This document shows, one piece after another, positions 3,094 through 22,898 of a DNA stretch of 47,310 bases. Position 1 is the first letter of the stretch, and each line of letters starts with the position of its first letter. Source of the DNA: Vitrella brassicaformis CCMP3155. Lineage: Eukaryota; Protista; Chromerida. The stretch lies in the NCBI GenBank assembly GCA_001179505.1, contig CDMY01000583.1, positions 1 through 47,310 on the forward strand, read 5' to 3'. The notes below the pieces were generated by a model. The model saw nothing but the letters and a program-made list of their open reading frames with translations. It did no database searches and was not told the origin of the DNA. The translations under genes and the position numbers were made by a program.

Positions 3094-6000
3094 TCACTGC
3101 CCCCCGCTCCCCTGCCCCTCTGCCGATGAGCTGGCCGACGGCTCCGAGGGATGCATGACAGCAGCAGGGTGGCCGGGCGGCATCTCCTCTCGGCCTACTG
3201 GTGGTGTTGGCGCCGGTGGTCGGGCTGGTCGGTGGCACTGACCCCCGCCGGCCTTTTTCGCCGCCCCGTCCTCATCCTCCGACAGCACAATCACGTCACT
3301 GCTGCGCACCACAGGCCGTTGCAGCTGTCGACGGCGGCTGCGAGACCGGGGTGCCGATGATGTGGGGGCGGGTGGCCGCTCGTCGTGGTCCTCCTCGTGC
3401 TGCGAGTCAGAATAGTCGAAGCAGCCGTCGTTGCCGTCGTGGGACGGGTGGAAGGGCTCCATCGCCACTTGGGGGACCAGGTCGCCAGTGGCCCTCTCAC
3501 TTGTAAGCGTGAAGGGCGGGCGCACTCGCGCGGACAACTGAGTGTGGTCGAAGCGGTGGCTGCTCGGAGCTTCTTCCGGGGCGTGGTCATCGTCCATATC
3601 GAGTGACCCACCCGTTGCCCGTCCATCGCCCTTGTCGGGGCCTCCGTGGCGGCCAGCGTCATTGACGAGCGGAGGGGCGGAGAGAGAGAGGGGGTGCAGA
3701 GGAAGGGGCGGCTCGTGTTGGTCGTCCTCGGCCTCCTCGTGGTGCGGTGGTGGCGTCTCCGTCTTGTCTGCGTGTGCATCTGCCGGCTGCCCCTCTCCCC
3801 TGGCGGCATCGTCGGTGCCGCCATCGCCCTCATGCTCGCCCAGCTGCTGCCGCTCGATGGCCACCTCGTCGTCGAGGCCATGTCGGGTGTCGGATCCGTC
3901 ATCGGCAGCCTGGCGGCTGTTTGTGTCCTCATTCTCGTTCTCATCCTCATCCTCACCCTCATGGTCATCGTCATTTGCCGACTCAACCTCGCCCTCGTCC
4001 ATGCCACCCGCTGCAGCAGTGTCCTGATGCTCGGAGGCCCCCATCTGCGGCCGTCTCGGTCGCCGTGAGCGTGACCAGCTGCTGCGGCGTCGCCTGCCCC
4101 GGCCAATGCCCCTGCCCCTGCCCCTCCCAGATGTGCCGGCGGCTGTTGCCGGGCGGTGTGCAGGGGGAGGATTCTCGATGAGCGGCGAGCCATCTGGCTG
4201 CCGCTTCTTGGTGATGAAGCGGCCGTCAGGGCCGCGGATGCGACCCTTCTTGTCCTGCTGCTTGTCAGGCTTGGCCTTGCCGCTGCTGTCTCGGCTGTTT
4301 GGACCCTCCTTGTTGGCTGGCGACGACGCCACTGTCATCTCGGAGGCCTGATCAGTGTGCGAGTGGGAGTGGGGGTGGCAGTTGGCCTTCTTGTGCTTCT
4401 TGCTCGAGTTGCTGTCGGCCACGGCGAGGTTGGTCTCCTCGAGCTTGCGGCGAGACCGGGTCATCCTCACTGCATCTGACGCCCATTCGTCGGCAGCAAC
4501 AGGGAGGGAGGGCTCCTCGGTGGACTCGGCTGCAGCTGCTGCTGCGTTGGCCTCCTCTCCCTCTCCCTCCCCTCCCTCTCCCCCATCGGCCATCATTCGG
4601 CTGAAGATCTCCTTGGACGTGCGGGCGACGCTCCTGCCGCCCTCGCCGAGCTGGGTGCCGGCACCGAACCCCTCTATGGCGCTCTCTATCACTCCCAGAA
4701 ACGAGGGTGACACATCTCGGTCCCGGCCGCCATGGGCACGATTGCCACTACAACCACCCTCACCATACTGTGGGTAGTGGCCCTGGATAGGTGGGACCAC
4801 CTCGGCGGCCGATGCCGCCCGCCGCCTTCTGCCCCCTTTGCCGCCCCGGCCCCTCCCCCTGGCTGACCGGCCCCTGCCCGCCGACGCACCGGACTTGGGG
4901 CGTTTGGAGGGCGGCCGGCTGGCTTTCCTCAAGGGCTGCGTGTCGATGGCATCGTCAGGGTGGGGGCTCTCTGCCGCCTCCAGTGCCTGGGAGTTGTTGT
5001 GCCGCCGTGTGCGTGAGGATGCGAGGGTGGGGACGCTGGCTGGCGACATGTCCACATCGGCGTCGTGGGACAGCGGCGGGATGGCCTCGGACTCCTCCTC
5101 CTCCTCACCACCACCACCCGGCTCCTTGTGCTCGTGCCGGGCCTTCCATCGGTCGGCCCGCTGCTCGCACTTCTCAAAATACTGCATGGCCGCGGCGCGG
5201 GCCACCTGGCGGCCCCCCCAATCGTGGCTGCGGAAGTGGCGCGTCGCCATGCGGAACTCCGGCGGGTCGTGGCACACCAGCCGCTTGCCCGTGGCCTGCC
5301 GCTTGGTCGGCCGCGTCACGCAGTACGCCTCGCTCACACAGTCCCATGATATCGTCACCTCGGGCGACAGCTGACGGTCCATTGCCGCTGCTGCTGCCGA
5401 TGAGTTGCTCCTTTTGCGCCTGGCGCGGAGGCCCAGCTGTCTGAGCACCGCTGGTGGGTGTGAGCAGAGAGTCGGGACTCGCCAGGGAGAGCCGCCACCT
5501 CTTCGTGGGTCGGCACACGGGGCCGGGGGCGGTGCCGAGTCGTGTGTGCTGGTGGGGTTAATTCGGGAGGGGAGGGCGTAGGTCCAGCTGTGCTTGTAGT
5601 GGACCGACTGAGGGCAGAGAAGGCGGAGAAATGACGAGCCATGTGTGCATGTGTCTGTGTGGGAGAGCATGGGCTGCTCTGCTCACCGTGAGGTTGAGTC
5701 GCTTCTCTTGCCCTCCATTAAGGTATCTTACTTTGATCTGCACGCACACAGCAACCACACAGACGCTTCGATGGTGTCTTGTCATGTGTCTGTAAGGTGT
5801 CTGTGTGTGCAGACCTCTGTGGGTTTGTGCTGCCTGGCAGCGTATCTCCAGACCTCCAGCACTACCGCATCGTCATAGCCCTTGTTAGAATCCGACCACA
5901 CGCACACCACCGAACCTGGACCACGCACACACATTGTCGCCATCCATCCATCCATCCATCTATCTCTTGTCGTCATGTACCTGGCTGCAGCGTGTTAGCG

Positions 6001-10168: not shown

Positions 10169-13100
10169 ATGGACTACGAGGAGAACAACGAGTTCGACCG
10201 CGCCGTCGACGCCTCTGAGCTGTTGCCCGAGGCCTTTGGCCTCGACAACATCGACGACGACAACGACGGCCTCTCTGCCGACGGCGCGTCGGACGATGAG
10301 CTAAATGCCGACGATCCCTTGGCCGAGTTTGAGCGGCAGGCCACCTCCACCGCCCATGACGACTTTCGCGTCCTCGTCGGCCAGGCGGCCGATAGAGGCA
10401 CTCGGCCGCACCATCAGCAGCATCAGCAGCAGCAGCAGCAGCAGCAGACGCGAGACCAGGCTGTGGATGCGCTGCTGAAGGATCCGCCGCGCTTTAGGCA
10501 GTACCTACCGCCTCGCGAGGCTGATAAAAAGGTTGACAGCACGCGGCAGGTGTCTTTCCCGAGGCAGCTTGACCTCAATCAGGCGGGGCTTAACCGCGCC
10601 CTCCAAGGCATCTTTGCGAAGGTACCTAGGTGGGCCGGGCGGGGCGGATGCCTTCCTTGCCCCTGTGTGTGTGTGAGGCGATGTGTGTGTGGTGCTGCCC
10701 AGGGTGTGATATCGGTGTTAGCGAGCCAGGACAGCGAATTCGTTAACGCCAAGGCCACCGTCACCGTGGTCGACGGGCCCGTGTGGCTGCTACACAGGTC
10801 ACCCTCTCCCCCTCCCCCTCACACACCAACACACACACACACACACACATACATAGGGGTCGGTCTGTGTCTGTGTGTTCTGTGTTGGTGGTGTGATCAG
10901 GCGTGTGGTGATATTGGGCATCTCAGAGCGCAACCGAGCCTACCACAACGACCTCGTCACCATAGAGCTCATCGCAGTGGAGCTGCCGCAGAATGCTCTC
11001 GACGCCATGTATAAAAAAGTGAAAGGTGGGCGAGGCTACCGACCGCACAGACCACACGGACCACACAGAGGGGTCCTGGTGCTATGTCTTGTTGTGTTGC
11101 CTTGTGTTGTCTTGTGTTGTCTGTGTGGTGTGTGGGTCGCTCAGCTCGAGGTAATATGAGTATACGAGAGCGAGAGTTCGCTCTATCTTATCACATTCTG
11201 AATGAGAGCATTCTCTACGGCAGAGTGGCGAGGTAGGTACGCCGTGCAGTGGGCCCGGCAGACAGACAGACAGACAGGCAGTATGTGTGTGTGTGTGGTT
11301 TGTGTGTTTGCAGAGCTGAGCCTTTATTCGCCGGACTTCGACACACACAAGTGGTCTGCAGGTACACAACCCTCCCCCACAGCCCCACACACCCCACACA
11401 CACACATCAAGCCCGCTCTCTCCCTCTCTCCCCATCCCCCCCTCTCTCTCCCTCTGTGTGTGTGTGTGCAGGGTGTGTCAGGCCCAGACGGACACGATGT
11501 ACTGGACCTTCATCCCGCTGCTGCGCGAGATGCCGGCCGTCAGTGTGGCCATGGCGACAGACACCAAGGACATGCTCTTCAAGTTCACCCTCGAGCAGCT
11601 CTACGTCGTCCAAATCACTGGTCGGTGCGGTGGCTGGTGCGATCGACGAGGCCTTCGTGGCACCCCTTCGTGTGTGTGTGTGTGTGTGTTTTGCATCAGG
11701 CTGGGCTCACTCTCGGCCGAGGGGCCGAGTGCTCCGCTTTCTTAGAGACCCTTTTAGGTCAGTCAGTCAGCCGGGCAGGCAGGAAGGCGTTGATGACACA
11801 CTCGGGGTGTGTGTGTGTGTTGGCACCCACAGGCACATCTACGACGTGTTAGAGGTGGAGTACCGCCTCTACCTGCCCAGCGACAAGCTGCAAGACATTC
11901 ACAAATACAGAAGGTGAGCTGAGCTACGGACGACACACCCCACACACACCACACCCCACACCANNNNNNNNNNNNNNNNNNNNNNNNNNNNNNNNNNNNN
12001 NNNNNNNNNNNNNNNNNNNNNNNNNNNNNNNNNNNNNNNNNNNNNNNNNNNNNNNNNNNNNNNNNNNNNNNNNNNNNNNNNNNNNNNNNNNNNNNNNNNN
12101 NNNNNNNNNNNNNNNNNNNNNNNNNNNNNNNNNNNNNNNNNNNNNNNNNNNNNNNNNNNNNNNNNNNNNNNNNNNNNNNNNNNNNNNNNNNNNNNNNNNN
12201 NNNNNNNNNNNNNNNNNNNNNNNNNNNNNNNNNNNNNNNNNNNNNNNNNNNNNNNNNNNNNNNGGGGGGGGGGGGGGGGGGGGGGGCAAGGGAGAAGGTG
12301 TGTTTGCTCCACGTGTGTGTGTGTGTGCCTGTGTGGTGATGGGTTTGCAGTGCCGCGTCTCTGCTCGACGCCGGCTTGAGCGACCCGGATCGCACAGACA
12401 TGGGGGCCATGTGCACCTTCACCATTGACCCACCGGGTACACTCACACACACACAAACAGACATCCACACACACATGGATGGATGGATGGGCTGCAGACG
12501 CCGAGGTGCTCGATGACGCCATCTCTATCGACCTCAGCGACGGACAGACAGAGTCAAAGTCAGCAGCACCGACCCCTCCCCCCACCCCCCTCCCCTCCCC
12601 TCTCACCCTCTCTCTCTCCCTCTCTCTGTCTCTCTCTCTCTCTGTGTGTGTGTGTGTATGTGTGTCCATCACTTTACTGCCTCAGGACCGTCTACGTGCA
12701 CATCGCCGATGTCGAGCATTTCCTCCCGCTGGGCAGCTATGCCGACCGCTACGCCATGGAGAGGATGGTGACAGCCTTCCTGAAGGACTACCGTGACAAC
12801 ATCGAGTGCTGCGTGGACCTGCTGCCCAAGGGGGTCTCGGAGGCGGGGTCGCTCACGCCGGGGCTGGACAAGCTGGCCGTCACCTTTGTGTAGGTTCGAT
12901 CACTTCCCACACACACAGAGAGAGAGAGGGGGGGAGAGAGAGAGGGAGAGAGACCACACAGAGGAGAGCCCCACCGCTCCACAGACAGAGACCCACCCTC
13001 TCTCTCTCTCTCTCTCTCTTGTCAGGTTACAAGTGGACATGGCCACAGGCGCCTTCAGCTGCTCCACCTTCCTCCGCTCCAAGATCCGCTCACAAGCCCG

Positions 13101-13968
13101 GCTCTCCTACCGCTGCGCCACAGACATCATCCGCGGCGGCCAGGGCACCACCGACGTGCCCCCAGGCAACACCGGCACCACCATGCGGGCCTCCGTCAAG
13201 GAGGTCTGGAAGATCGCCGAGAAGATGCGCCAGCGGCGGCTGGCTGAGGAGGGGCTGGGGGGGATGTATGCCGATGGGGACTTTGCCGCTGACGAGTTTG
13301 AGGGGCGTGTGCTGGTGAAGGAGTTCATGACGGCCGTCAACCGCTTTGCCGGGCAGTATTTGAGAACCAAATTCGACAAAGAGGCGCCAAGGTGAGTCGC
13401 GAGGAATGCCCCTCTTCTTGTCACTGGATGGACTCTCCCTCTGTCTCCCTGTGTGTGTGTGTGTGTGTGAAGGTACATCCATCCCTGTGTGGACGGCGCG
13501 TGGGTGCGTGCGGCCTCTCGCGTGTGTCACGGTATGGGGGCGATGGACAACGACCCTGACACGGACAGCAAGACCTCCATCGACGTCTCATCGGCCAACG
13601 TACCCTCACACCCCACACACCACAACCACACACACACAGAGGGAGCATGTGTGTGTCTGTGTGTGTGTGTGTGTTAGGCGTGTCGCTCTGTGCTGACAGA
13701 AGTGGTGGCCAACATGAAGGCCAACCTGGAGGGCCGCCTGGCTGCTGACGAGATCGAGAAGGTCGCGGAGAGCTTCTTGGCGCAGCTGCGGGCCAGAGCG
13801 CCGCCGCCCGAATACGCAATGCCGTGGCACGCAATGCCGGAAGGTCAGCTACCCCCCTCCCCATCCATCCATCCATCCATCCATGTGTGTGTGTGTCTGC
13901 AGCGACCGAGAAGGACAACGAGACCCACATCGACGAGAACCGAGAGCTGTTTATCCAGTAAAGACGAC

Positions 13969-14005
<37 letters not shown>

Positions 14006-15700
14006 CACAGTACAGGACACTCTTCTCACCTGCCCTCTGTGTGTGTGTGTGTGTGCAGGGAGATTCCTCACTGGATTGGCCGCGACCAACTCATCCAGAT
14101 CTTCAGCTTCTGGGGCGATGTCGATTTCTGCGACATCAAGACGAACCGCAAGACGGGCAGGTCCATCGGCAAGGCCGTCATCGCCTTCAGGACCATCCAG
14201 CAGGCCAAGACCGCCATGGCCAAGATGCAGGGCCATGGGCCGTTCACCACTGGGCAGCGGCTGAAGATCTCCTTCAGCAACAGGGACAGCCGCCCACAGC
14301 AGCAGAAGGGCAAGCCGAGCAAATCATGTAACCGACCGTCGACACACATGAGGGCTGTTTATGGCTACTCTCCTGGTGTGTGCGTCACGGCCATGCAGCG
14401 CCGAAGCCCTCAAGCGCGCCGTCCCCCTCTCACCACTCGGCGGCAGTGCTGGAGGGCGGGTATCACACCTTCCCGGTGTTTGGGCTGGAGCCCTACTTCC
14501 AAGTCACATCGCCACTGAGACGGTACACCCACACCCACACAGAGGGAGAGGGGAGGGGGGTGGGGTGGTCGGGCGGGCGGGCGGAGTGATTAGACTTGAG
14601 TAGTGCACGGGGCAGTGGTCCCGCACCCGAGCCATCCCGTGGGAAGCAGTGAGGGTGCGCAGGGGTTATGACCGTCAGCCACCGTGTGTGTGTGTGCCTC
14701 TCTCCCTCCCTCCCTCCCTCCCTCCCCCCCTCACTCTCTCTTTCTCCCTCACTCTGATCTGTGTGTGTGTGTGTGTGTGTGGCTTGGGCCAGGTATATCG
14801 ACGTCATCGGCCACCGTCTGTTGCTGCGCGGCGACCGTCGGCAGCGGCAGGGTGGTCAGGGGCGCCAGGCGAGCAGCAGCGTGTCGGAGCTTTTCCTGAA
14901 GCCCAAAGAGGGCGAGGACAGAGAGGAGGCCTCGCAGTGGGTGGCGGAGCTGCCCAAGATTGTGCTGAGATACAACCTCCGCTTCAGAATGGTCCGTGCC
15001 CCCCACAGACACACACACACACACACACAAACCTCTCCCTCTGTGTGCGTCAGGTTCGGCGCGCCGAGCAGCAATTCGAGCTGATGTCCTTGTGCAAGAC
15101 CCTCCGCGGCAGTAATGTCAAAACCACCGCCCTCGTCGGGCCCCTCGGCACCTCCGGCATCACTCTCCTCTTCCCAAAGCGGCTGCACCTCAGGGGCTGC
15201 CCCTACCACCCAATGCCCATCAGGTGCGATTGATGCGCACCTACAAGGGCGACGGCAGCCATGAGTGTGGTGGGTGTGTGTGGGTGTGTGTGCAGGCAGC
15301 TGAAGCTGCCGCTGACTGTGTGGCGCAGCGACAAGATGCAGTGCATCTACCACAAGGGCCGCGAGCAGCAGAGACGATTCGAGGGCGACTTTGTCAGAAT
15401 ACGGTCAGCACACTGACACACACACACACACACGCACACACAAGAGAGAGATTGGGTGCAATCGCAAGCCGTGTGTGGTTGGTTTGTTCGTTCAGGTCTC
15501 TGGAGGACCGCAGTCACGTGGACACCTGGTTCGAGGACTGCTACCTCAAGCCCTTTGAGTCGACCCTCACTGTCGAATTTGGCCTTAACAAATGTGGTGT
15601 GTGCCCCCCAGACACCACCACACAGAGAGAGAGGGGGAGGGAGGGAGGGAAGACACCCGCTCACCGACATAGTTGCTGCACCGATTGGACCTTCTCCCCG

Positions 15701-15736
<36 letters not shown>

Positions 15737-18280
15737 TGTGTCTTACATCTCAGTGCCGGTGCCATGGTGCCGTGTTGCTCTAGTGTCGGTGCACATCGCC
15801 ACCGCCCCCCGGCCTCTGCCGTGCTTCCATCGGCAGTACCCTGACGCTTTCAGCTCCTACCTCGACCTCAGGGATGCTTACCGGGTGAGTAGTTGTTGGT
15901 TTCTTGGTCTGGGTTTGTGGGTCTCTCTGTGTGTGAGGCGTTGTCCGCCGTGTCTGTGTGTGTCGTGTGTGCAGGTGTTCAAGTCGATGGATGCTTACGC
16001 ATCCTTCTGGCACAGAATCCGGCAGGTGGGTGTCACTAATCGACGTCGCGCTCAGCTCATTTCTCTCTCTGTGTGTGTGTGTGTGTGTGTGGGCCGTCAG
16101 GCGCAAGTTCACGCCTCGGCCATAATGGACGACTTTGTGAGCGAGCTGCTGCCCACCGCCAATGTGCGCATCATGCGCAAGCAGGACAGACCCGCCAGAC
16201 ACGAACGCTTCAAACCCTACCACGAGGTGCGCACCACACGCACACACACACATGTAGGGAGCCACTGGGCGAGTTGTGTTGTGGTTTCTTCTCCCGTCCG
16301 TCAGGTCCAGTGTGTGCTGTCGACGGAGAGCTTCGGCACCAACGTGTCGCGGAAGGTGCAGGAGAACGACCTGGTCATCCTCTCCATCCAGTTCGACGAG
16401 ACCCGCTCCTGGCAGGGCTTCGGCCACGTCACACACAAGCACTGGCGTCGAGCCCGGGGTGGCAAGCCTGCTGCGGCTGCGGTGGGGGGTGGGGAGGAGG
16501 AGATGGAGATGACCATCAAGCTCTCGCCGGCATGTCACTCCTACTGGTCGGTGGGCGACAGGACACATGTGCACACACACAGAGGGAACCGCACTTTTGT
16601 GCGTGTGTGTGGTTGTGTGTGGGCAGGGAGGAAGCCCCTGGTTTGGTGAAGCTGCCCGACGAGGTGCACCGCTTCAAGGACCACATGTTTCTCCAGTTCA
16701 TCGCCGTCATCAAACACGACATCAACATACTCAGGTCGCCCACCACACACCTCTCTCCCTCTCTCCCCCCCCACACACGCCTCGCTCCTGCTGTCGTCAG
16801 GTCCATCGAGAAGCTCTCGAACCGCTCACCAAACCAGCCCCTCGGCGGCGGCAGCCACAACAACAACCATTACAACAGCCACCACAAGAACCACCCCCGC
16901 GGCAGCAATGGCGGCAACAACGCCCCTCCCAGCAGCAGCAGCGGCCCCCGCTTCGCCGACTCTCGGCAGTCCGTCATGCGCACCCACCTCGTTCGAGCTA
17001 TGGTGCTGAGCGATGCCAAGGTGATGCGGGACCTGAAGGACCACGCCAGAACCAGGATCGACGCGCCGCTCAAGAGGTGTTTGCCGGAGTTTCTGGAGGC
17101 TCCGAGGGAGTGGTACAACGCGCCGGGGCTGCCGAGGCTCAACGACTTCCAGTGCAAGGCCGTCAGACAGGCCATGACGCACCCCATCAGCTGCATCCAG
17201 GGGCCGCCGGGCACCGGCAAGTCCATCACCACGGTGAGAGAGCGAGACCTCCTCTCAACACACAAACCACACAGACATGATGTCTGTCTGGCTGCAGATC
17301 CACATCGTCCACAACCTCCTGCGCCTGTCGTCTGCCATCGGCGAGGCGGCCATGCGCAAGGGCAGCGCGGCCGCGTCGGTCGAGCAGCAGAGGATCCTCC
17401 TGTGCGCGCCGAGCAACAAGGCCGCCGACAACCTCCTCGCTCTGCTCGTCAGATACGAGAAGGCCAGAGGCGTGCCGCTCAAAGTCGTCCGAGTCTATGC
17501 CAAGTCAGCGACCACACACACACACACACACACACGGGGGGAGAGAGAGAGAGAGAGAGAGAGGGGCGGAGGAAGGGAACACACATGTGACCATCCATCC
17601 ATCCATCCATGTGTGTGTGTGTGTGTGTGTGTCTGTGCGCGACACTGCGTGCGACACACAGGTCGATCGAGGCCAAGTACTACCCCACCTGGCGCACCAT
17701 GCAGAACTACGGCAGCAGCATCATCCGGGAGGACTTCGAGATGGACCCCCGCCTCAAGGAGTACGCCCTCCATGAGGCCGTCAGGAAACACAGGCCGGAG
17801 CTGGTGCGGCAGTGCGAGGACCTCAAGGCCAAGTACGAGGAGATTCGGAACGGGTCAGCGGCGAGAGGGGGGGGACGACAGACAGACAGACAGACAGACA
17901 GAGAGACAGAGAGAGAGAGAGAGAGAGCGCCTGTGTGTGTGTGTGTGTGTGTGTGCAGGAAGGTGTTCTTTCAAAAGCATGGAGATGCCATTCGGCAGTA
18001 TGAGACCGGCCTCGCCAAACTCGAGGCCGACCACATAACGGTCAGTCAGTCCATCCATCCAGGTCTTTCTCCTCCGTCTGACCTCTCTCTCTCTCTCTCT
18101 CTACCAGGGCTGTCAGATTGTGGTTGGCACGTGCGACACGTGCTTCTTGCACTCCTCCATGGCTTTTGAAGAGTTCTCTACTGTCATTATTGATGAAGCC
18201 GCACAGGTCAGTCGCTCTGTCTGTCTGTCTGCCTAGCGGCCCACCGCACACACAAAGGTGTGTGTGTTTGCCTGCACTCG

Positions 18281-18317
<37 letters not shown>

Positions 18318-21300
18318 TAGGGCACTGAGGTGGACTGTGTGCTGGCCTGCTGCAAAGCCACGGACCGCGTCATACTCGTCGGTGAGGGAAAATGCCTCCA
18401 ACATCCTCACTCCCCACCCACACACCCACACACGCAGACACAGACAGAGATTGCTGAGGCGTTGCTGTCTGTCTGTCCTTCAGGCGACCACAAGCAGCTC
18501 GGCCCCGTGGTCATTGAGAAGAACATGTATCCCCCCGTCTACAAAGTCCTCGAGAAATCCCTTTTCGAGCGGCTCTTTGTCTCAGAGAAGCAGCGGGAGG
18601 AGATGCGAAGACAGAACCAGACCCAGCAGCAGCAGCAGCAGCAGTCGCCCCAGGCCCAGGAGGGAGACAACAAAGCCGCCACTGGCAGCCGCCCGCACCG
18701 AGGGCAGAAGGCGATCCCGCACATCACCTTGCGCAAGCAGTACAGAATGCACCCGAGGATCCGCGAGTTCATCTCGACGGAGTTCTACGAGGGGCAGCTC
18801 AAGGACAGCGAGGAGACCCGAGATCTCGAGTATCGGCTGTGGACACAGCCCGACATGGCGGTGTTCCCCTGGCCCGCCGGCAGACACAAGCCCATGATGC
18901 TCTGCGACAACACCACCCCACACCAGCCCAGACAGGTCGGTGGGTCGGTGGGCATCCACCCTCCCTGGTGGCACTCCCTCTCCCTCTCCCCCTCTGTGTG
19001 TGTGTGTGTTTAGGCCAACAAGATCGAGGACGTCATAGGTCAGCAGGAGTCGTCGATGGGCCGGCAGTCGCAGGTGTCGCCCTACTCCCTCACGAATCCT
19101 GGCGAGGTGCGCCTCGTGGCCGCCTGCTACCAGTACCTCATCGGCATGGGCGTCAGCGCCAAGGACGTCGGCATCATCACGCCCTACAAGGCGCAGGTCG
19201 GTCGGCCTCTCTAAATGGGAGGGAGGGAGGGAGGGAATACGTTTCTCTCTTTCTCTCGTCATCAATCAGGCTGAGATGTTGCGCGAGGCGATAATGGAGG
19301 TCGTGGGTCTGAAGGCCCCCTCCGAGAACTCTGTCCTCGACACACCCCTCCGCAACCTCAGCAACGGCCGCATGAGAGCCGGGGGGAGAGGGAGGGGCGG
19401 GAGGGGCAGGGGGGTCTTTAACGGCCGTGGTGTGGCTGACCTGGTGGACGGCGCTGCTGGTGCGGGTGTGCCCTCGGTGTCCATGTTGGGGTGCGCCAGT
19501 GGGGAGGGCGACCCCGACGACGTGTTGCCCATCATCGGGACGGTGCACGCCCTGCAGGTGGTCCCCGGGACTCTGTCACACTGACACCGACAGACGCACC
19601 TGTCCATCCATCCGTCCCTTGTGTGTTCGGTGTGGGGGGGGGGGGGGGNNNNNNNNNNNNNNNNNNNNNNNNNNNNNNNNNNNNNNNNNNNNNNNNNNNN
19701 NNNNNNNNNNNNNNNNNNNNNNNNNNNNNNNNNNNNNNNNNNNNNNNNNNNNNNNNNNNNNNNNNNNNNNNNNNNNNNNNNNNNNNNNNNNNNNNNNNNN
19801 NNNNNNNNNNNNNNNNNNNNNNNNNNNNNNNNNNNNNNNNNNNNNNNNNNNNNNNNNNNNNNNNNNNNNNNNNNNNNNNNNNNNNNNNNNNNNNNNNNNN
19901 NNNNNNNNNNNNNNNNNNNNNNNNNNNNNNNNNNNNNNNNNNNNNNNNCGCAGGGGATGGAGCGTGACTATATCATCATCTCCTTTGTCAGAAGCGTCAC
20001 CGAGGAGGAAGTGGCCACTGGTACTCACACACACACACACACGCACACAACACAAACACAGAAGCGCCCCTCCCCTGTGTATGTGCTCTTGTGGGCGGTG
20101 TGGTGTTGCAGGTCGTTCTGTGGGCCTCCCCCGGGAGCTGGAGTCGCAGTCTGAGGGCCTGCCGATGCAGCACGAGCAGCTCTTCAAGCACATTATGCGG
20201 CGGATGCTCAGAAGCTCTCTCGGCTTCCTCAATAACAAAAGGATCCTCAACGTGAGGGCGAACGACCCGCCGCCCACAGACTCCCACACACACACATGGA
20301 TGGATGTGTGTGTGTGGGGTGGGGGGCGTTAGGTGGCTTTGTCCCGAGCCAAGAGGGGGCTCCTGGTGTTTGGCAACTTGGAGGTCCTCTCGTCAGGTGG
20401 GTGTGGGTGGGACATCAGACAACAGACACACGCGCACAGACACGCAGTGCTCTCCGCTCTGTGTTGTGTGTGTGTGTGGGTGCATTGATTGGTTCAGAGC
20501 TGATCTACGAGCGGCTGATCCACCACTACCGCAGCCTCAAGTGCCAGATCTCCACAGAGCAGTTCAAACAGCTCATGTGAGAAGAAGCCATACCCACACC
20601 CACACACCCTCCCTCTGTCTGGTGTGTCTGGTGTGTCTGTCAGGGAGGGCACCATCAACCCCCACGCCACCCCCCCTCCCCCGTCAGGTCTCCCCGCCGC
20701 TGACGACATCGGCATGGACGTCACAGAGGAGGACCGCATCAGGCAGCTGGACATCCTCCGCTCCATCAGAGCTGGTGGTGGCCGCGAAGACGCCAGCCCC
20801 ACACACAGCTCTCCTGCCGCCGCTGCAGCTGGGGCCCCCGCTGCGGCGGCGGCGGCTGCTAGTGGCGGCGGAGGGGTGGCGGACGTCGATGCGCTCAGCT
20901 TATGGGATGACGACGCCTCGCCGAGGGTGAGAAGACACTCGAGGGCGCGGTCATGGTCGGCCATTGTCACGGCGCTTCTCTCGTCTGTCTGTCTCATGAT
21001 TACAGGCGAACGACGATCTGCTGAGCGGTTCTGAGTATGAGGGCTCCGACGATGAGGACTCCTTCGACCAGTATGAGCAGCGGGAGGTCTTCAAGCAGCA
21101 GTACTTCTTCGGAGGAGGCAAGAAGCACCAGCAGCAGCAGCAGCAGCCCAGCGTGTTCACCAAGTTCGCCAAGGAGCTACACAACGGCACTACAGCAGCA
21201 GACAACGAGCCGGACTCGCCCCCAGTGGCACCACGAGCTCCACCACCAGCAGCAGCAGCTGCTGCTGCATCGCCTCAGACGCCCAATGTGCCTGTGTCGA

Positions 21301-22898
21301 TGGGCCGTCGACCGTCCGGACTAACACCGGGCTCTCCGCCATCAGGAGGGAGTGGTCGCCGGTCGGGCAGTGGGCAGAGCTCTGCCCGACGGGCTGTGGG
21401 GCCATCGATGTCGATCGACGAGCTCAAAATGCTGGTACGTCTTTTGTGTGCCGAGCTTCCATCCATCCATCCATCCATCCAGAGCCTGCTGCCGTTGATG
21501 TGATGGCTGGTGGTCTCTGTCTGTGCGTGCCTTCCTCAGGCGGCACAGCGGGCCGAGGGCACCATAGCTACCGCCACGATGGAGCGTCAGGCGTCGAGCC
21601 CGCTCAACAACCTGCCCAGCACCACACACCAGCTGCCGCCCCTCCCACCCCCCTCGGGCCAGACAGGAGGAGGCCGCAGCACATCCGCCCCACTCACGTC
21701 CCCCGCACTCAATGGGCCGCCGGCTGTCGATGATCAACAAGCGCCCCCTCAGGGGACCACTCCTGCTGGCGCTGCGGCAGAGTCCGAGCAGGCCTCTTCA
21801 TCGCAGAGTATACCAAATCGCCGGCCGCCGTCTGTGCCGGACGTCCCTGCGGGTCGGGGCATCTTCGCAACTGGCCATGTCGCCCACCGGCAGCAGCAGC
21901 CACCGGACGGCCTGCAGAGCAATGGCGTTGCTACTGCGGTGAATGGGGACCACCCTCCTCTGGCTCCGCGCAGCAACGGCACCAACAATGGTCGAGGTGG
22001 TGGTGGTGGTGGTGAGGTGGTGGGTGCCTGTCGGATGTGCCAGGAGCCGATTGAGGTGGACTTGTCGGGCGGCATACGGCAGGAGGACCTTTCCTTCATC
22101 GAGCTGAGGCTGTGTCTGCAGCACTTTGCCGCACTCAAGAAACAGTTCATGTGTGTGAGAGAGCCGTCACACACACACACACACACAGATGGATGGATGG
22201 ATGTGTGTGTGTGTGTGTGCAGCGAGATGGAGCAGTTCTGGCGGGCCAAGTTTGGCAACCAGCCGGAGATCGGCATTGTCTTCGGCGTCATCTGTTCCCA
22301 GAGCTACCAGGCCGTATGCGCACGCACACACAAGGCGAGATGCCACTCAGCCAGTCATTGTGCCCGTTGTTTGATTTCAGCGTCTGTCTGACATACTGCG
22401 AGAGTACGGCGACGAGTGGGGCAAGGTGATAGTGGAGTTCGTGGCACACAAGGGGGTCAACTTTGAGCTCACCGACGCTCAAGGGAGAAGACCATGTGGG
22501 CTCATCACACACACACACATGCAGTGGCTGGTGGGGTGCATTTCCCTCTCTCTCTCTCTCTCTCTGTGTGCGTGTGTGTGTGTGTGTGTGTGATTGTCAG
22601 TTGAGGCTGCGGTTCTCGATTTCCAGACGGCTGCCATCCGCTGCCTATACAGCCTCTGTAAGGACACACACACACACACACACATACACACACACAGACT
22701 GGGCGATGTGTGTATGTGTGTGTGTTGGCTGGAGTGGCTGCCTGTCCTGCAGGTGACACCAACAGTGCGTTCTTCATGGAGCACCTCGACCAGATAGACA
22801 CCGCCCTGGCCGTCGAAAGGCTCGACTGGAATCCCCACACCAGCCCCACCGCACAGACTCACACAGAGAGGTCCGAGCAAAGCAATGGGGTCAACTAG
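10169..22898 (+). CDS. Large multi-exon RNase II/Dis3-family (RNB) exoribonuclease fused to a UPF1/DNA2-like SF1B helicase (HELZ2-like architecture), with an RRM inserted in the RNB domain
   Basis: Cold-shock motif VVILGISERNRAYHNDLVTIEL. RNB motifs FTIDPP|DAEVLDDAISI, VYVHIADVEHF, SKIRSQARLSY, LVKEFMTAVN and YFQVTSPLRR|YIDVIGHRLL. Helicase motifs QGPPGTGKS, ILLCAPSNKAADNL, VIIDEAAQ, VILVGDHKQLGP, QYRMHPRI, GIITPYKAQ, QGMERDYIIISFVRS and LNVALSRAKRGL. Two N gaps lie inside introns. Stop TAG at 22896-22898. Confidence 0.85.
11964..12263. other. Assembly gap (300 N) followed by a poly-G run
   Basis: N run inside an intron of the RNB-helicase gene. Confidence 0.99.
12400..14830 (+). other. RNB (RNase II catalytic) domain exons
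   Basis: TIDPPDAEVLDDAIS at 12420-12530 and TSPLRRYIDVIGHR spliced across 14500-14820. Confidence 0.9.
14059..14290 (+). other. RNA recognition motif (RRM) inserted within the RNB domain
   Basis: EIPHWIGRDQLIQIFSFWGDVDFCDIKTNRKTGRSIGKAVIAFRTIQQAKTAMAKMQGHGPFTTGQRLKISFS has an RNP1-like 'GKAVIAF' and the typical RRM spacing. Flanking intron phases (2 and 1) keep it in frame. Confidence 0.85.
17130..20400 (+). other. UPF1-like superfamily 1B helicase domain exons
   Basis: LNDFQCKAVRQAM...QGPPGTGKS (Walker A ~17200), DEAAQ (18192-18206), GDHKQLGPVV, KSLFERL, YRMHPRIREF, TPYKAQ and LNVALSRAK. Confidence 0.92.
19649..19948. other. Assembly gap (300 N) preceded by a poly-G run
   Basis: N run inside an intron between TVHALQ and GMERD. 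Confidence 0.99.

Follow-up and report, generated by a model that had tools for sequence, protein, structure and literature searches.

Can a non-animal genome encode an exoribonuclease and a helicase on a single polypeptide and, if so, did the two parts come together independently of HELZ2, the animal protein with the same combination? The question is raised by a 47,310 nt stretch of contig CDMY01000583.1 (hereafter, the window) from the chromerid Vitrella brassicaformis CCMP3155 (assembly GCA_001179505.1), positions 10169–22898 of which carry an RNB nuclease domain and a UPF1-like helicase of superfamily 1B (SF1B). In animals, HELZ2 is induced by interferon and is studied for its action against RNA viruses and LINE-1. 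An initial annotation of the Vitrella locus, made from the DNA letters alone, proposed a single HELZ2-like gene that arose by an independent fusion. We consider it likely that the locus encodes, in a single expressed gene, a HELZ2-type enzyme, i.e., an exoribonuclease with two cold-shock domains (CSDs), an RNB domain and an S1-like domain, joined to a C-terminal UPF1-like helicase; that dinoflagellates have members of the same family; and that the Vitrella fusion is most likely shared with HELZ2.

One spliced gene for nuclease and helicase

The window has a GC content of ~60%, and positions 10169–22898 consist of many short, stop-free pieces lying between stretches rich in (TG)n, (CA)n, (TC)n and (TCCA)n. 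This is the pattern of an intron-dense eukaryotic gene, and the features of the gene fit a myzozoan alveolate. In our gene model, the encoded domains are, in order, an acidic N-terminus, two cold-shock/OB domains, an RNB domain split by an RNA recognition motif (RRM), an S1-like domain, a linker with a 1B barrel, the UPF1-like SF1B helicase, and a low-complexity tail.

Four public sequencing runs were placed on positions 13200–19199. Run X8 is read as DNA because it covers introns, while runs X1, X2 and X7—taken as RNA—contain exon pieces only, joined at GT..AG borders. Record 13 of run X7 is a 4,489 nt contig from which GT..AG introns have been removed; it extends from 14065 past 18936, and connects the RRM and RNB exons with the helicase exons. 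All seven listed contig joints agree with exon borders of the model, and exon lengths match three record offsets: 564 nt (14991 to 16103), 434 nt (17503 to 18483) and 105 nt (16627–16734). The 434 nt match involves no free parameter; for the 564 nt match, one exon end was solved as 15596 and then found to precede GT. Joints, adjacent record pieces and sequence together fix 18 consecutive exons from 14065 to 18936. Joined, these give 3,149 nt, or 1,049 codons, without a single stop (the other two frames contain 11 and 18), in a frame that passes through the RRM, RNB motif IV (FQVTSPLRRY), the S1-like segment, the linker, GPPGTGKS and the remaining helicase. Nuclease and helicase are thus separated neither by a stop nor by an intergenic stretch that stays unspliced, and are encoded by one transcribed, spliced gene. 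This bears out the single, phase-consistent gene—RNB domain plus complete SF1B helicase—of the initial annotation, which had named a stop between the RNB and helicase exons as counter-evidence; none occurs in the 18 joined exons.

The whole gene, as a tentative coding sequence (10169..22898, plus strand, as are all its features below), comprises 44 exons, 7,755 nt and 2,584 aa, and all introns are GT..AG and 59–437 nt long. The model was built by hand. Exons from 14059 to 19196 are anchored by RNA joints and record offsets, and the others were picked by frame, collinearity with dinoflagellate orthologues, and the splice consensus of the RNA-proven introns (xxG/GT... and (C or T)AG/G; here and below, a slash within letters marks an exon border). 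What speaks against the model is that its 5' and 3' thirds fall outside the RNA-covered span; the parts at 10169–13300 and beyond ~20.6 kb are inferred. Pfam was run on stop-free plus-strand pieces and single exons, and the spliced model protein was compared with the relatives collected.

Relatives and the origin of the fusion

Who are the closest relatives of the Vitrella protein? A representative search with the helicase piece returned three long matches (P0005, P0044 and P0054), each consisting of an RNB domain, ~420 aa, and AAA_11-AAA_12; the RNB-AAA_11-AAA_12 order is found in these three and in P0058, P0059 and P0063. Collinear members of the family occur in five or more genera of dinoflagellates (Prorocentrum, Symbiodinium, Cladocopium, Breviolum and Polarella), and the gregarine Selenidium is also a member, with only the helicase part seen. 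With P0005, from Prorocentrum, the model aligns at E = 1.6e-110, and the alignment falls into five collinear blocks: CSD and RNB, motif IV, S1 and linker (model residues 895–1177), helicase, and post-helicase. Across P0005, P0059 (Symbiodinium natans), P0058 and P0177 (Cladocopium), collinearity holds over the full length (E = 1e-104 to 1e-110). These proteins share with Vitrella (i) a hydrophobic residue at the second aspartate of RNB motif I, (ii) a motif IV of the form YFQVTSPLRR(W/Y), and (iii) beyond the helicase, acidic residues of the form SGSE-EG together with a Cys/His motif. They differ in having no RRM in the RNB domain (42 aa, as opposed to ~159 aa in Vitrella) and in a CCCH-type zinc finger of their own. 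The finger is carried by one of two dinoflagellate clades (clade 1), between the S1-like domain and the helicase, with the consensus RRKTQLCxxxxRGxxCxxxxDCWYAHG (P0005 ~930–960, P0058 926–955, P0059 1562–1591); it is a weak match to Pfam zf-CCCH_UNK, the UniRef name of P0005 is 'C3H1-type domain-containing', and no such motif was seen in the Vitrella linker. Judged by these alignments, the Vitrella gene is a member of a family common to dinoflagellates, and the family is probably present in other myzozoans.

The layout extends further still. The malawimonad Gefionella okellyi (EukProt EP00698; P0103 / P0206) encodes an RNB domain (172 bits, with the canonical four aspartates) followed by a UPF1-like helicase, in 1217–1278 aa. 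Since dinoflagellates, Gefionella and animal HELZ2-like proteins all share the RNB-helicase order, the uniqueness that the initial annotation implied for it does not hold. Three other proteins are of note: P0009 (1903 aa), one of the matches, has AAA_28, a domain of RNA-dependent RNA polymerase type (387 bits) and, at its C-terminus, a UPF1-like helicase, so that here too an RNA enzyme and this type of helicase share one chain; P0001 is a giant protein of 7241 aa with eight matched helicase stretches; and P0064, from the green-algal Pedinophyceae sp. (2857 aa), contains two near-identical tandem UPF1-type helicase cores of 594 bits each.

Several lines of evidence point from this family to HELZ2. 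In searches with P0005, metazoan HELZ2 is the next best match after dinoflagellates, ahead of UPF1, and in the ESM Atlas it is HELZ2-like clusters that come nearest (score 0.97). A maximum likelihood tree of 57 helicase cores places the alveolates and Gefionella in one clade (100/98), in which Gefionella is long-branched and basal to the alveolate helicases. This clade is sister to helicase 2 of HELZ2 (97/90); the UPF1 clade (100/99) falls outside, and helicase 1 of HELZ2 lies far away. The parts flanking the catalytic domains, compared profile to profile with hhalign, agree: the OB region before the RNB scores 87.9 against HELZ2 and 46.5 against RNase R, the S1-like segment 57 against HELZ2 and 19 against RNase R, and the helicase 1B region 72 against HELZ2 and 50 against UPF1. 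Spacing is similar too, with 441–551 aa between motif IV and Walker A in alveolates (551 in Vitrella) and 463–680 aa in HELZ2.

Other results weigh against kinship with HELZ2, and suit an alternative in which an alveolate ancestor independently joined a Dis3L2- or RNase R-type nuclease to a UPF1-type helicase, such that the likeness to HELZ2 is convergent. Firstly, the approximately unbiased (AU) test does not reject a grouping of the alveolate helicases with UPF1 (p = 0.147), and the helicase tree was built without MOV10, HELZ, SMUBP2, SETX and ZNFX1. Secondly, in profile searches of the PDB, the best solved helicase is UPF1 (218 bits) and the best solved RNB is DIS3L2; the dinoflagellate RNB profile gives 60–125 bits with HELZ2, 96 with DIS3L2 and 87 with DIS3 (both from the PDB), and ~100–105 with some bacterial RNase R-like proteins. 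The RNB tree, which has bacterial RNase R outgroups only and no Dis3L2 or Dis3, is uninformative on the kinship of this domain. Thirdly, parts of the protein are unlike HELZ2: the middle linker (~200 aa) has no detectable relatives outside alveolates and no similarity to HELZ2 or UPF1 by hhalign, N-terminal zinc fingers and helicase 1 are both absent, and Pfam OB_HELZ2 (PF25049) matches neither the exon-wise pieces (a weak negative, as the domain is split over exons) nor the dinoflagellate orthologues. Finally, the 1B region of HELZ2 is itself nearer to UPF1 (score 106) than to the alveolates (71). Raw profile scores, considered as a measure of kinship, were dropped as uninformative because the alveolate branch is long.

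What favours a shared origin? The best tree unites precisely those helicases that are linked to an RNB domain (alveolate, malawimonad and HELZ2 helicase 2), and leaves UPF1 outside; the OB, S1 and 1B flanks are all nearer to HELZ2 than to RNase R or UPF1; domain order and spacing are the same as in HELZ2; and in neither group is the second catalytic aspartate held constant. Animals, moreover, also have HELZ2-like proteins with a single helicase: the Clavelina 'HELZ2-like' protein P0080 (1546 aa) reads OB_HELZ2-RNB-AAA_11-AAA_12 without helicase 1, and several mollusc, hemichordate and fish HELZ2-like proteins contain the C-terminal helicase only. Because of these animal proteins, the lack of helicase 1 is no argument for independence. 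As the tree and all three flanks favour HELZ2, a shared origin is likelier than an independent fusion. We regard the latter as the less likely but still plausible explanation, and hold that the Vitrella fusion probably shares its ancestry with the CSD-RNB-S1-helicase-2 core of HELZ2.

Thus, of the initial annotation, the HELZ2-like character of the gene stands, while the inferred independent fusion is not supported by the sister position of the helicase, the nearer flanks or the existence of single-helicase animal proteins. Its description of HELZ2 also needs amending: rather than helicase halves on either side of the RNB, HELZ2 has two complete helicase domains flanking it, with a CSD/OB pair before the RNB and an S1-like domain after it (PMC10516660). 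The placement of the family outside the UPF1 clade further means that the database names of the dinoflagellate relatives—'UPF1', 'Regulator of nonsense transcripts 1-like', or none—are in the case of the 'UPF1' labels misleading, and can now be corrected.

A separate observation concerns bacteria. Many Bacteroidota RNase R proteins (P0243, P0251, P0288 and others) have precomputed Pfam OB_HELZ2 (PF25049) matches, and score 157–175 bits against the HELZ2 RNB, on which scale Schizosaccharomyces pombe Dis3L2 in the PDB reaches 172 bits. By these scores, the OB/RNB unit of HELZ2 may lie no further from bacterial RNase R than from Dis3L2.

Catalytic state and domain-by-domain model

Is the nuclease likely to work? 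The N-terminal two thirds of the RNB domain lie at 12351..13843 in six exons, which score 207 bits with the dinoflagellate RNB profile; Pfam RNB matches pieces at 12.69–12.89 and 13.02–13.37 kb (profile positions 35–218; E = 2.9e-8 and 3.4e-8). Motif I is split by an intron and reads TIDPP/DAEVLDDA at 12427–12520 (in full, TIDPPDAEVLDDA), and motif II, HIADV, is at 12699–12713. The C-terminal part of the domain occupies exons 14399–14522 and 14793–14991 (14399..14991), aligns with P0005 596–643, is connected by the RNA joint 14327/14399, and contains motif IV (FGLEPYFQVTSPLRRY). Measured against the active consensus D-x5-D-x-DD, the Vitrella motif I is D-x5-V-x-DD: valine stands at the second of four aspartates, and the other three are kept. 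At this position clade-1 dinoflagellates have I, V or M and Gefionella has D, while animal HELZ2 proteins range over D, N, C, A, E, V and R.

The valine could lower or abolish nuclease activity. Indeed, the DPPDAEVLDDA reading of motif I raises the possibility of a pseudo-nuclease, in which a catalytically dead RNB would only clamp RNA for the helicase, in the manner of Ssd1 or certain dinoflagellate paralogues. These paralogues form the second dinoflagellate clade (P0044, P0054, P0063 and P0202, from Cladocopium, Breviolum and unnamed transcriptome or metagenome proteins): they have none of the motif I aspartates (e.g., MGPMVGIQHKQLPVSI), while motif IV-like residues and the helicase are intact, and they appear to be paralogues that have kept the architecture but lost the nuclease activity. 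Since they retain their helicase, nuclease-dead versions of the architecture evidently persist. The RRM adds a further hint of general drift, in that positions 3 and 5 of its RNP1 (IGKAVIAF) are non-aromatic. Against a dead nuclease, three of the four aspartates are retained in Vitrella, including the third, and are conserved along with intact HIADV and TSPLRRY across Vitrella and the clade-1 dinoflagellates. Mutation of the third motif I aspartate abolishes the activity of other RNB enzymes. The same holds for HELZ2, the human form of which has asparagine at the second position and is nevertheless an active 3'-5' RNase (PMC10516660). We therefore think a dead nuclease improbable, and expect the Vitrella enzyme, by analogy, to be active and HELZ2-like in its working.

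The two cold-shock/OB domains precede the RNB at 10703..11913. CSD1 is encoded by exons 10703–10797 and 10901–11025 (with RNRAYHNDLV at 10929–10958), and CSD2 by exons 11145–11232, 11472–11620, 11700–11757 and 11833–11913. No Pfam match was obtained for them on single exons; they were identified by hhalign and by phmmer, in which model residues 140–641 align with P0005 67–554. The alveolate pre-RNB region matches the pre-RNB OB of HELZ2 with 97.7% probability (E = 1.4e-12) and CSD1 plus CSD2 of RNase R with 88% (E = 3e-6), in line with the Dis3/Dis3L2-like cold-shock N-terminus of the initial annotation, which exon-wise Pfam scanning does not see. Upstream, exon 1 (10169..10621, beginning with the start ATG) encodes an acidic, Q-rich region of ~150 aa (D 15%, Q 12%), in which the exon-wise Pfam scan finds no domain. 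On the other side of the RNB, the S1-like domain (15054..15511) consists of exons present in the RNA contigs, and was recognized by hhalign: the alveolate post-RNB segment matches the HELZ2 S1-like segment with 96.9% (E = 1.3e-10), and has no significant match to the post-RNB region of bacterial RNase R.

While the CSD, RNB and helicase domains of the initial annotation were found as described, an RRM within the RNB had been left out of it. The RRM (13903..14327) occupies the RNB loop just before motif IV, between PPPEYAMPWHAMPE and GGYHTFPVFGLEPYFQVTSP, and is flanked by an acidic spacer and an S/P/Q-rich spacer. It begins with a 55 nt mini-exon (13903–13957) that encodes beta1/RNP2 (LFIQEI, within RELFIQEI); the phases fit on both sides, and although the mini-exon lies in a repeat-masked stretch, read depth in the neighbouring bins agrees with the chosen ends. 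The main exon (14059–14327) encodes RNP1 at 14165–14188, and its positions 14065–14327 are contained in RNA contigs of X1 and X7. Pfam RRM_1 matches at 14.06–14.24 kb (E = 3.3e-7; 30.5 bits against a cut-off of 20.7), and the best PDB matches are the RRMs of Sxl and Hu/ELAV (E = 1.6e-7). RNP2 is aromatic, while RNP1 lacks the two usual aromatics. In the alignment with P0005, the RRM is precisely the part left unaligned (a stretch of 159 aa in Vitrella and of 42 aa in P0005), and neither Pfam nor phmmer with the Vitrella RRM found an RRM in the collected relatives; the UniRef name of Cladocopium P0177, 'RRM domain-containing', was not reproduced by either method. By this comparison, the insertion is a Vitrella-specific, unusual local feature among the collected relatives, and most likely an extra handle for binding RNA or a partner.

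The linker (15512..17113) has an open frame with RNA joints at 15883/15974, 16224/16303, 16545/16626 and 16730/16797, and comprises the middle part, then the helicase's stalk and 1B barrel, and a stretch of low complexity (N/S/G). The linker also bears on whether two adjacent genes, one for the RNB and one for the helicase, were joined by read-through or by an artefact of contig assembly: contigs are assemblies, such that one spanning two genes is no proof of a single transcript, and the RNA status of the runs is inferred rather than on record, but the 1.9 kb between S1-like domain and helicase contains seven same-strand GT..AG introns and stays in frame, and part of the linker aligns with that of single-chain dinoflagellate orthologues from independent genomes and transcriptomes, so that the two-gene explanation is close to refuted. 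The 1B part matches HELZ2 with 96.9% and UPF1 with 91% in hhalign.

The helicase core (17114..20553) includes a 1C-like insertion and an RGG-rich insertion. Pfam AAA_11 matches at 17.14–17.24, 17.36–17.53 and 18.10–18.23 kb, and AAA_12 at 18.71–18.91, 19.06–19.20 and 19.95–20.01 kb; a UPF1-core hidden Markov model scores 184 bits over model residues 1353–2022, and the dinoflagellate helicase profile 381 bits. The SF1 helicase motifs are all intact: GPPGTGKS (17201–17224), DEAAQ (18192–18206), GDHKQLGP (18381–18506), YRMHP (18741–18755), TVHALQ/GMERD (19540–19968) and NVALSRAKRG (20249–20359). Together with the 1B barrel, they identify a UPF1-like SF1B helicase. Pfam UPF1_Zn_bind has no match, and upstream there are neither zinc fingers nor an N-terminal helicase; as the initial annotation had noted for the latter, the window contains no second helicase-like segment, the stretch before CSD1 being the acidic region described above.

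After the helicase, a tentative C-terminal tail of ~560 aa (20554..22898; A/G/P/S-rich, stop at 22896–22898) was assembled by frame and splice consensus. The model continues past a TGA at 20578 via the donor CAT/GTGAGA. The tail contains SGSEYEG (21024–21044) and CxxC...CxxH (22029–22127), and the dinoflagellate orthologues have SGSESEG and C-x4-C...GLC-x2-H(W/Y) after their helicases; a comparison of the tail profile with dinoflagellate tails found short motifs only, without significance (E = 1). These resemblances lend weak support to this spliced continuation.

Two assembly gaps interrupt the locus. The first (N run 11964–12263) lies in an intron at 11914..12350, with a phase 2 donor AAG/GTGAGC and the acceptor TTTGCAG/T: the upstream exon ends with LPSDKLQDIHKYR after 11913, leaving two codon bases, and the exon at 12351 supplies the missing one before continuing in frame 0 with DRTDMGAMCTFTIDPP. 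The second (N run 19649–19948) lies in an intron at 19558..19953 with the phase 0 donor CAG/GTGGTC and the phase 0 acceptor CGCAG/GGG; the acceptor abuts the Ns, and the junction restores helicase motif V as TVHALQ/GMERD. Because the phases fit and the Prorocentrum and other dinoflagellate orthologues align through both junctions with no residue missing, both gaps are best read as intronic, though a gap may formally hide an in-frame mini-exon.

The all-against-all representative search with the helicase piece, mentioned above, returned 57 weak matches only, and no self match that would be an annotated protein for the locus. The introns of the gene (e.g., 13849–14064, 17510–17660 and 17855–17958) are rich in (CA)n/(TG)n, (GA)n/(TC)n, (GACA)n and (TCCA)n microsatellites, repeat masking of which hid small exons, such as 13903–13957, from read placement. 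Upstream of the gene, positions 3097–5682 of the minus strand form an 862-codon stop-free stretch, which falls where the GC content of the window is highest (63–68%). Pfam matches nothing in it; it may encode a low-complexity protein, or be open simply by chance in GC-rich DNA.

Possible working and comparison with known systems

How might such an enzyme act? HELZ2 requires ATP and active helicases to get through a duplex in which the complementary strand carries a 5' overhang (PMC10516660). By analogy with human HELZ2, the Vitrella RNB would thread a single-stranded 3' end and degrade it processively, 3' to 5'. On reaching a duplex, the helicase would load onto the 5' single-stranded part of the complementary strand and move 5' to 3' with ATP, i.e., in the same physical direction as the RNB, peeling the duplex apart such that decay could continue. 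The RRM, in the loop before motif IV, would add a binding handle for RNA or a partner. The two activities and their cooperation are put forward on analogy, and a cellular role in RNA surveillance or in defence against viruses or retroelements is conceivable.

The RNB-helicase layout of the HELZ2 core is, then, not confined to animals, and the Vitrella protein is not a new kind of system. The paper that defines the HELZ2 nuclease describes HELZ2 only in metazoan groups (PMC10516660), and we found no literature linking HELZ2 to dinoflagellates or protists. Chromerid, dinoflagellate and malawimonad relatives move the origin of the single-chain nuclease-helicase to well before animals, or imply ancient transfer. 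A broader reading, which we offer as tentative, is that the HELZ2 module is an old eukaryotic RNA-degrading machine with a patchy distribution in animals, myzozoans and a malawimonad, that alveolates have nuclease-active and nuclease-dead paralogues of it, and that the Vitrella version is uniquely modified by an RRM, which may retarget or gate the nuclease. The family also supplies natural variants for mechanistic work: a minimal form with one helicase, a hydrophobic residue where human HELZ2 has asparagine, nuclease-dead paralogues, and an RRM within the RNB.

Among known systems, the closest is the core of metazoan HELZ2, together with invertebrate HELZ2-like proteins (e.g., Clavelina P0080 and oyster P0076/P0095): the order is the same (OB/CSD, RNB, S1-like, ~450–550 aa, Walker A), profile-profile comparison shows homology of the OB, S1 and 1B flanks, the second catalytic aspartate is variable in both, and by analogy the Vitrella enzyme is expected to use ATP-driven unwinding to supply a 3'-5' RNase with substrate (PMC10516660). 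At ~25–30% identity, the Vitrella protein differs from HELZ2 in lacking the N-terminal array of CCCH and other zinc fingers, in lacking helicase 1, and in its unrelated middle linker; in turn, it has the RRM, a long acidic N-terminus and a low-complexity C-terminal tail. As the host is not an animal, interferon control does not apply. With UPF1, the best solved match to its helicase, it shares the SF1B motifs, 1B barrel and 1C-like insertion, but it has no CH zinc-knuckle domain or SQ tail, falls outside the UPF1 clade, and has a nuclease as its N-terminal half. With Dis3L2, Dis3 (Rrp44) and RNase R it shares the CSD1-CSD2-RNB-S1 layout and motifs II and IV; these enzymes have no fused helicase and no RRM insertion, and keep the second motif I aspartate, while Dis3 has PIN/CR3 domains that the Vitrella protein lacks. 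The last comparison is with mtEXO, the RNB component of which, Dss1, is among the weakest PDB matches of the RNB profile (34 bits). The logic is nonetheless shared—an RNB 3'-5' exonuclease and an ATP-dependent helicase acting on structured RNA—but mtEXO divides it between separate polypeptides, Dss1 and the SF2 3'-5' helicase Suv3, whereas in Vitrella an RNB domain and an SF1B helicase of the 5'-3' type are carried on one chain.

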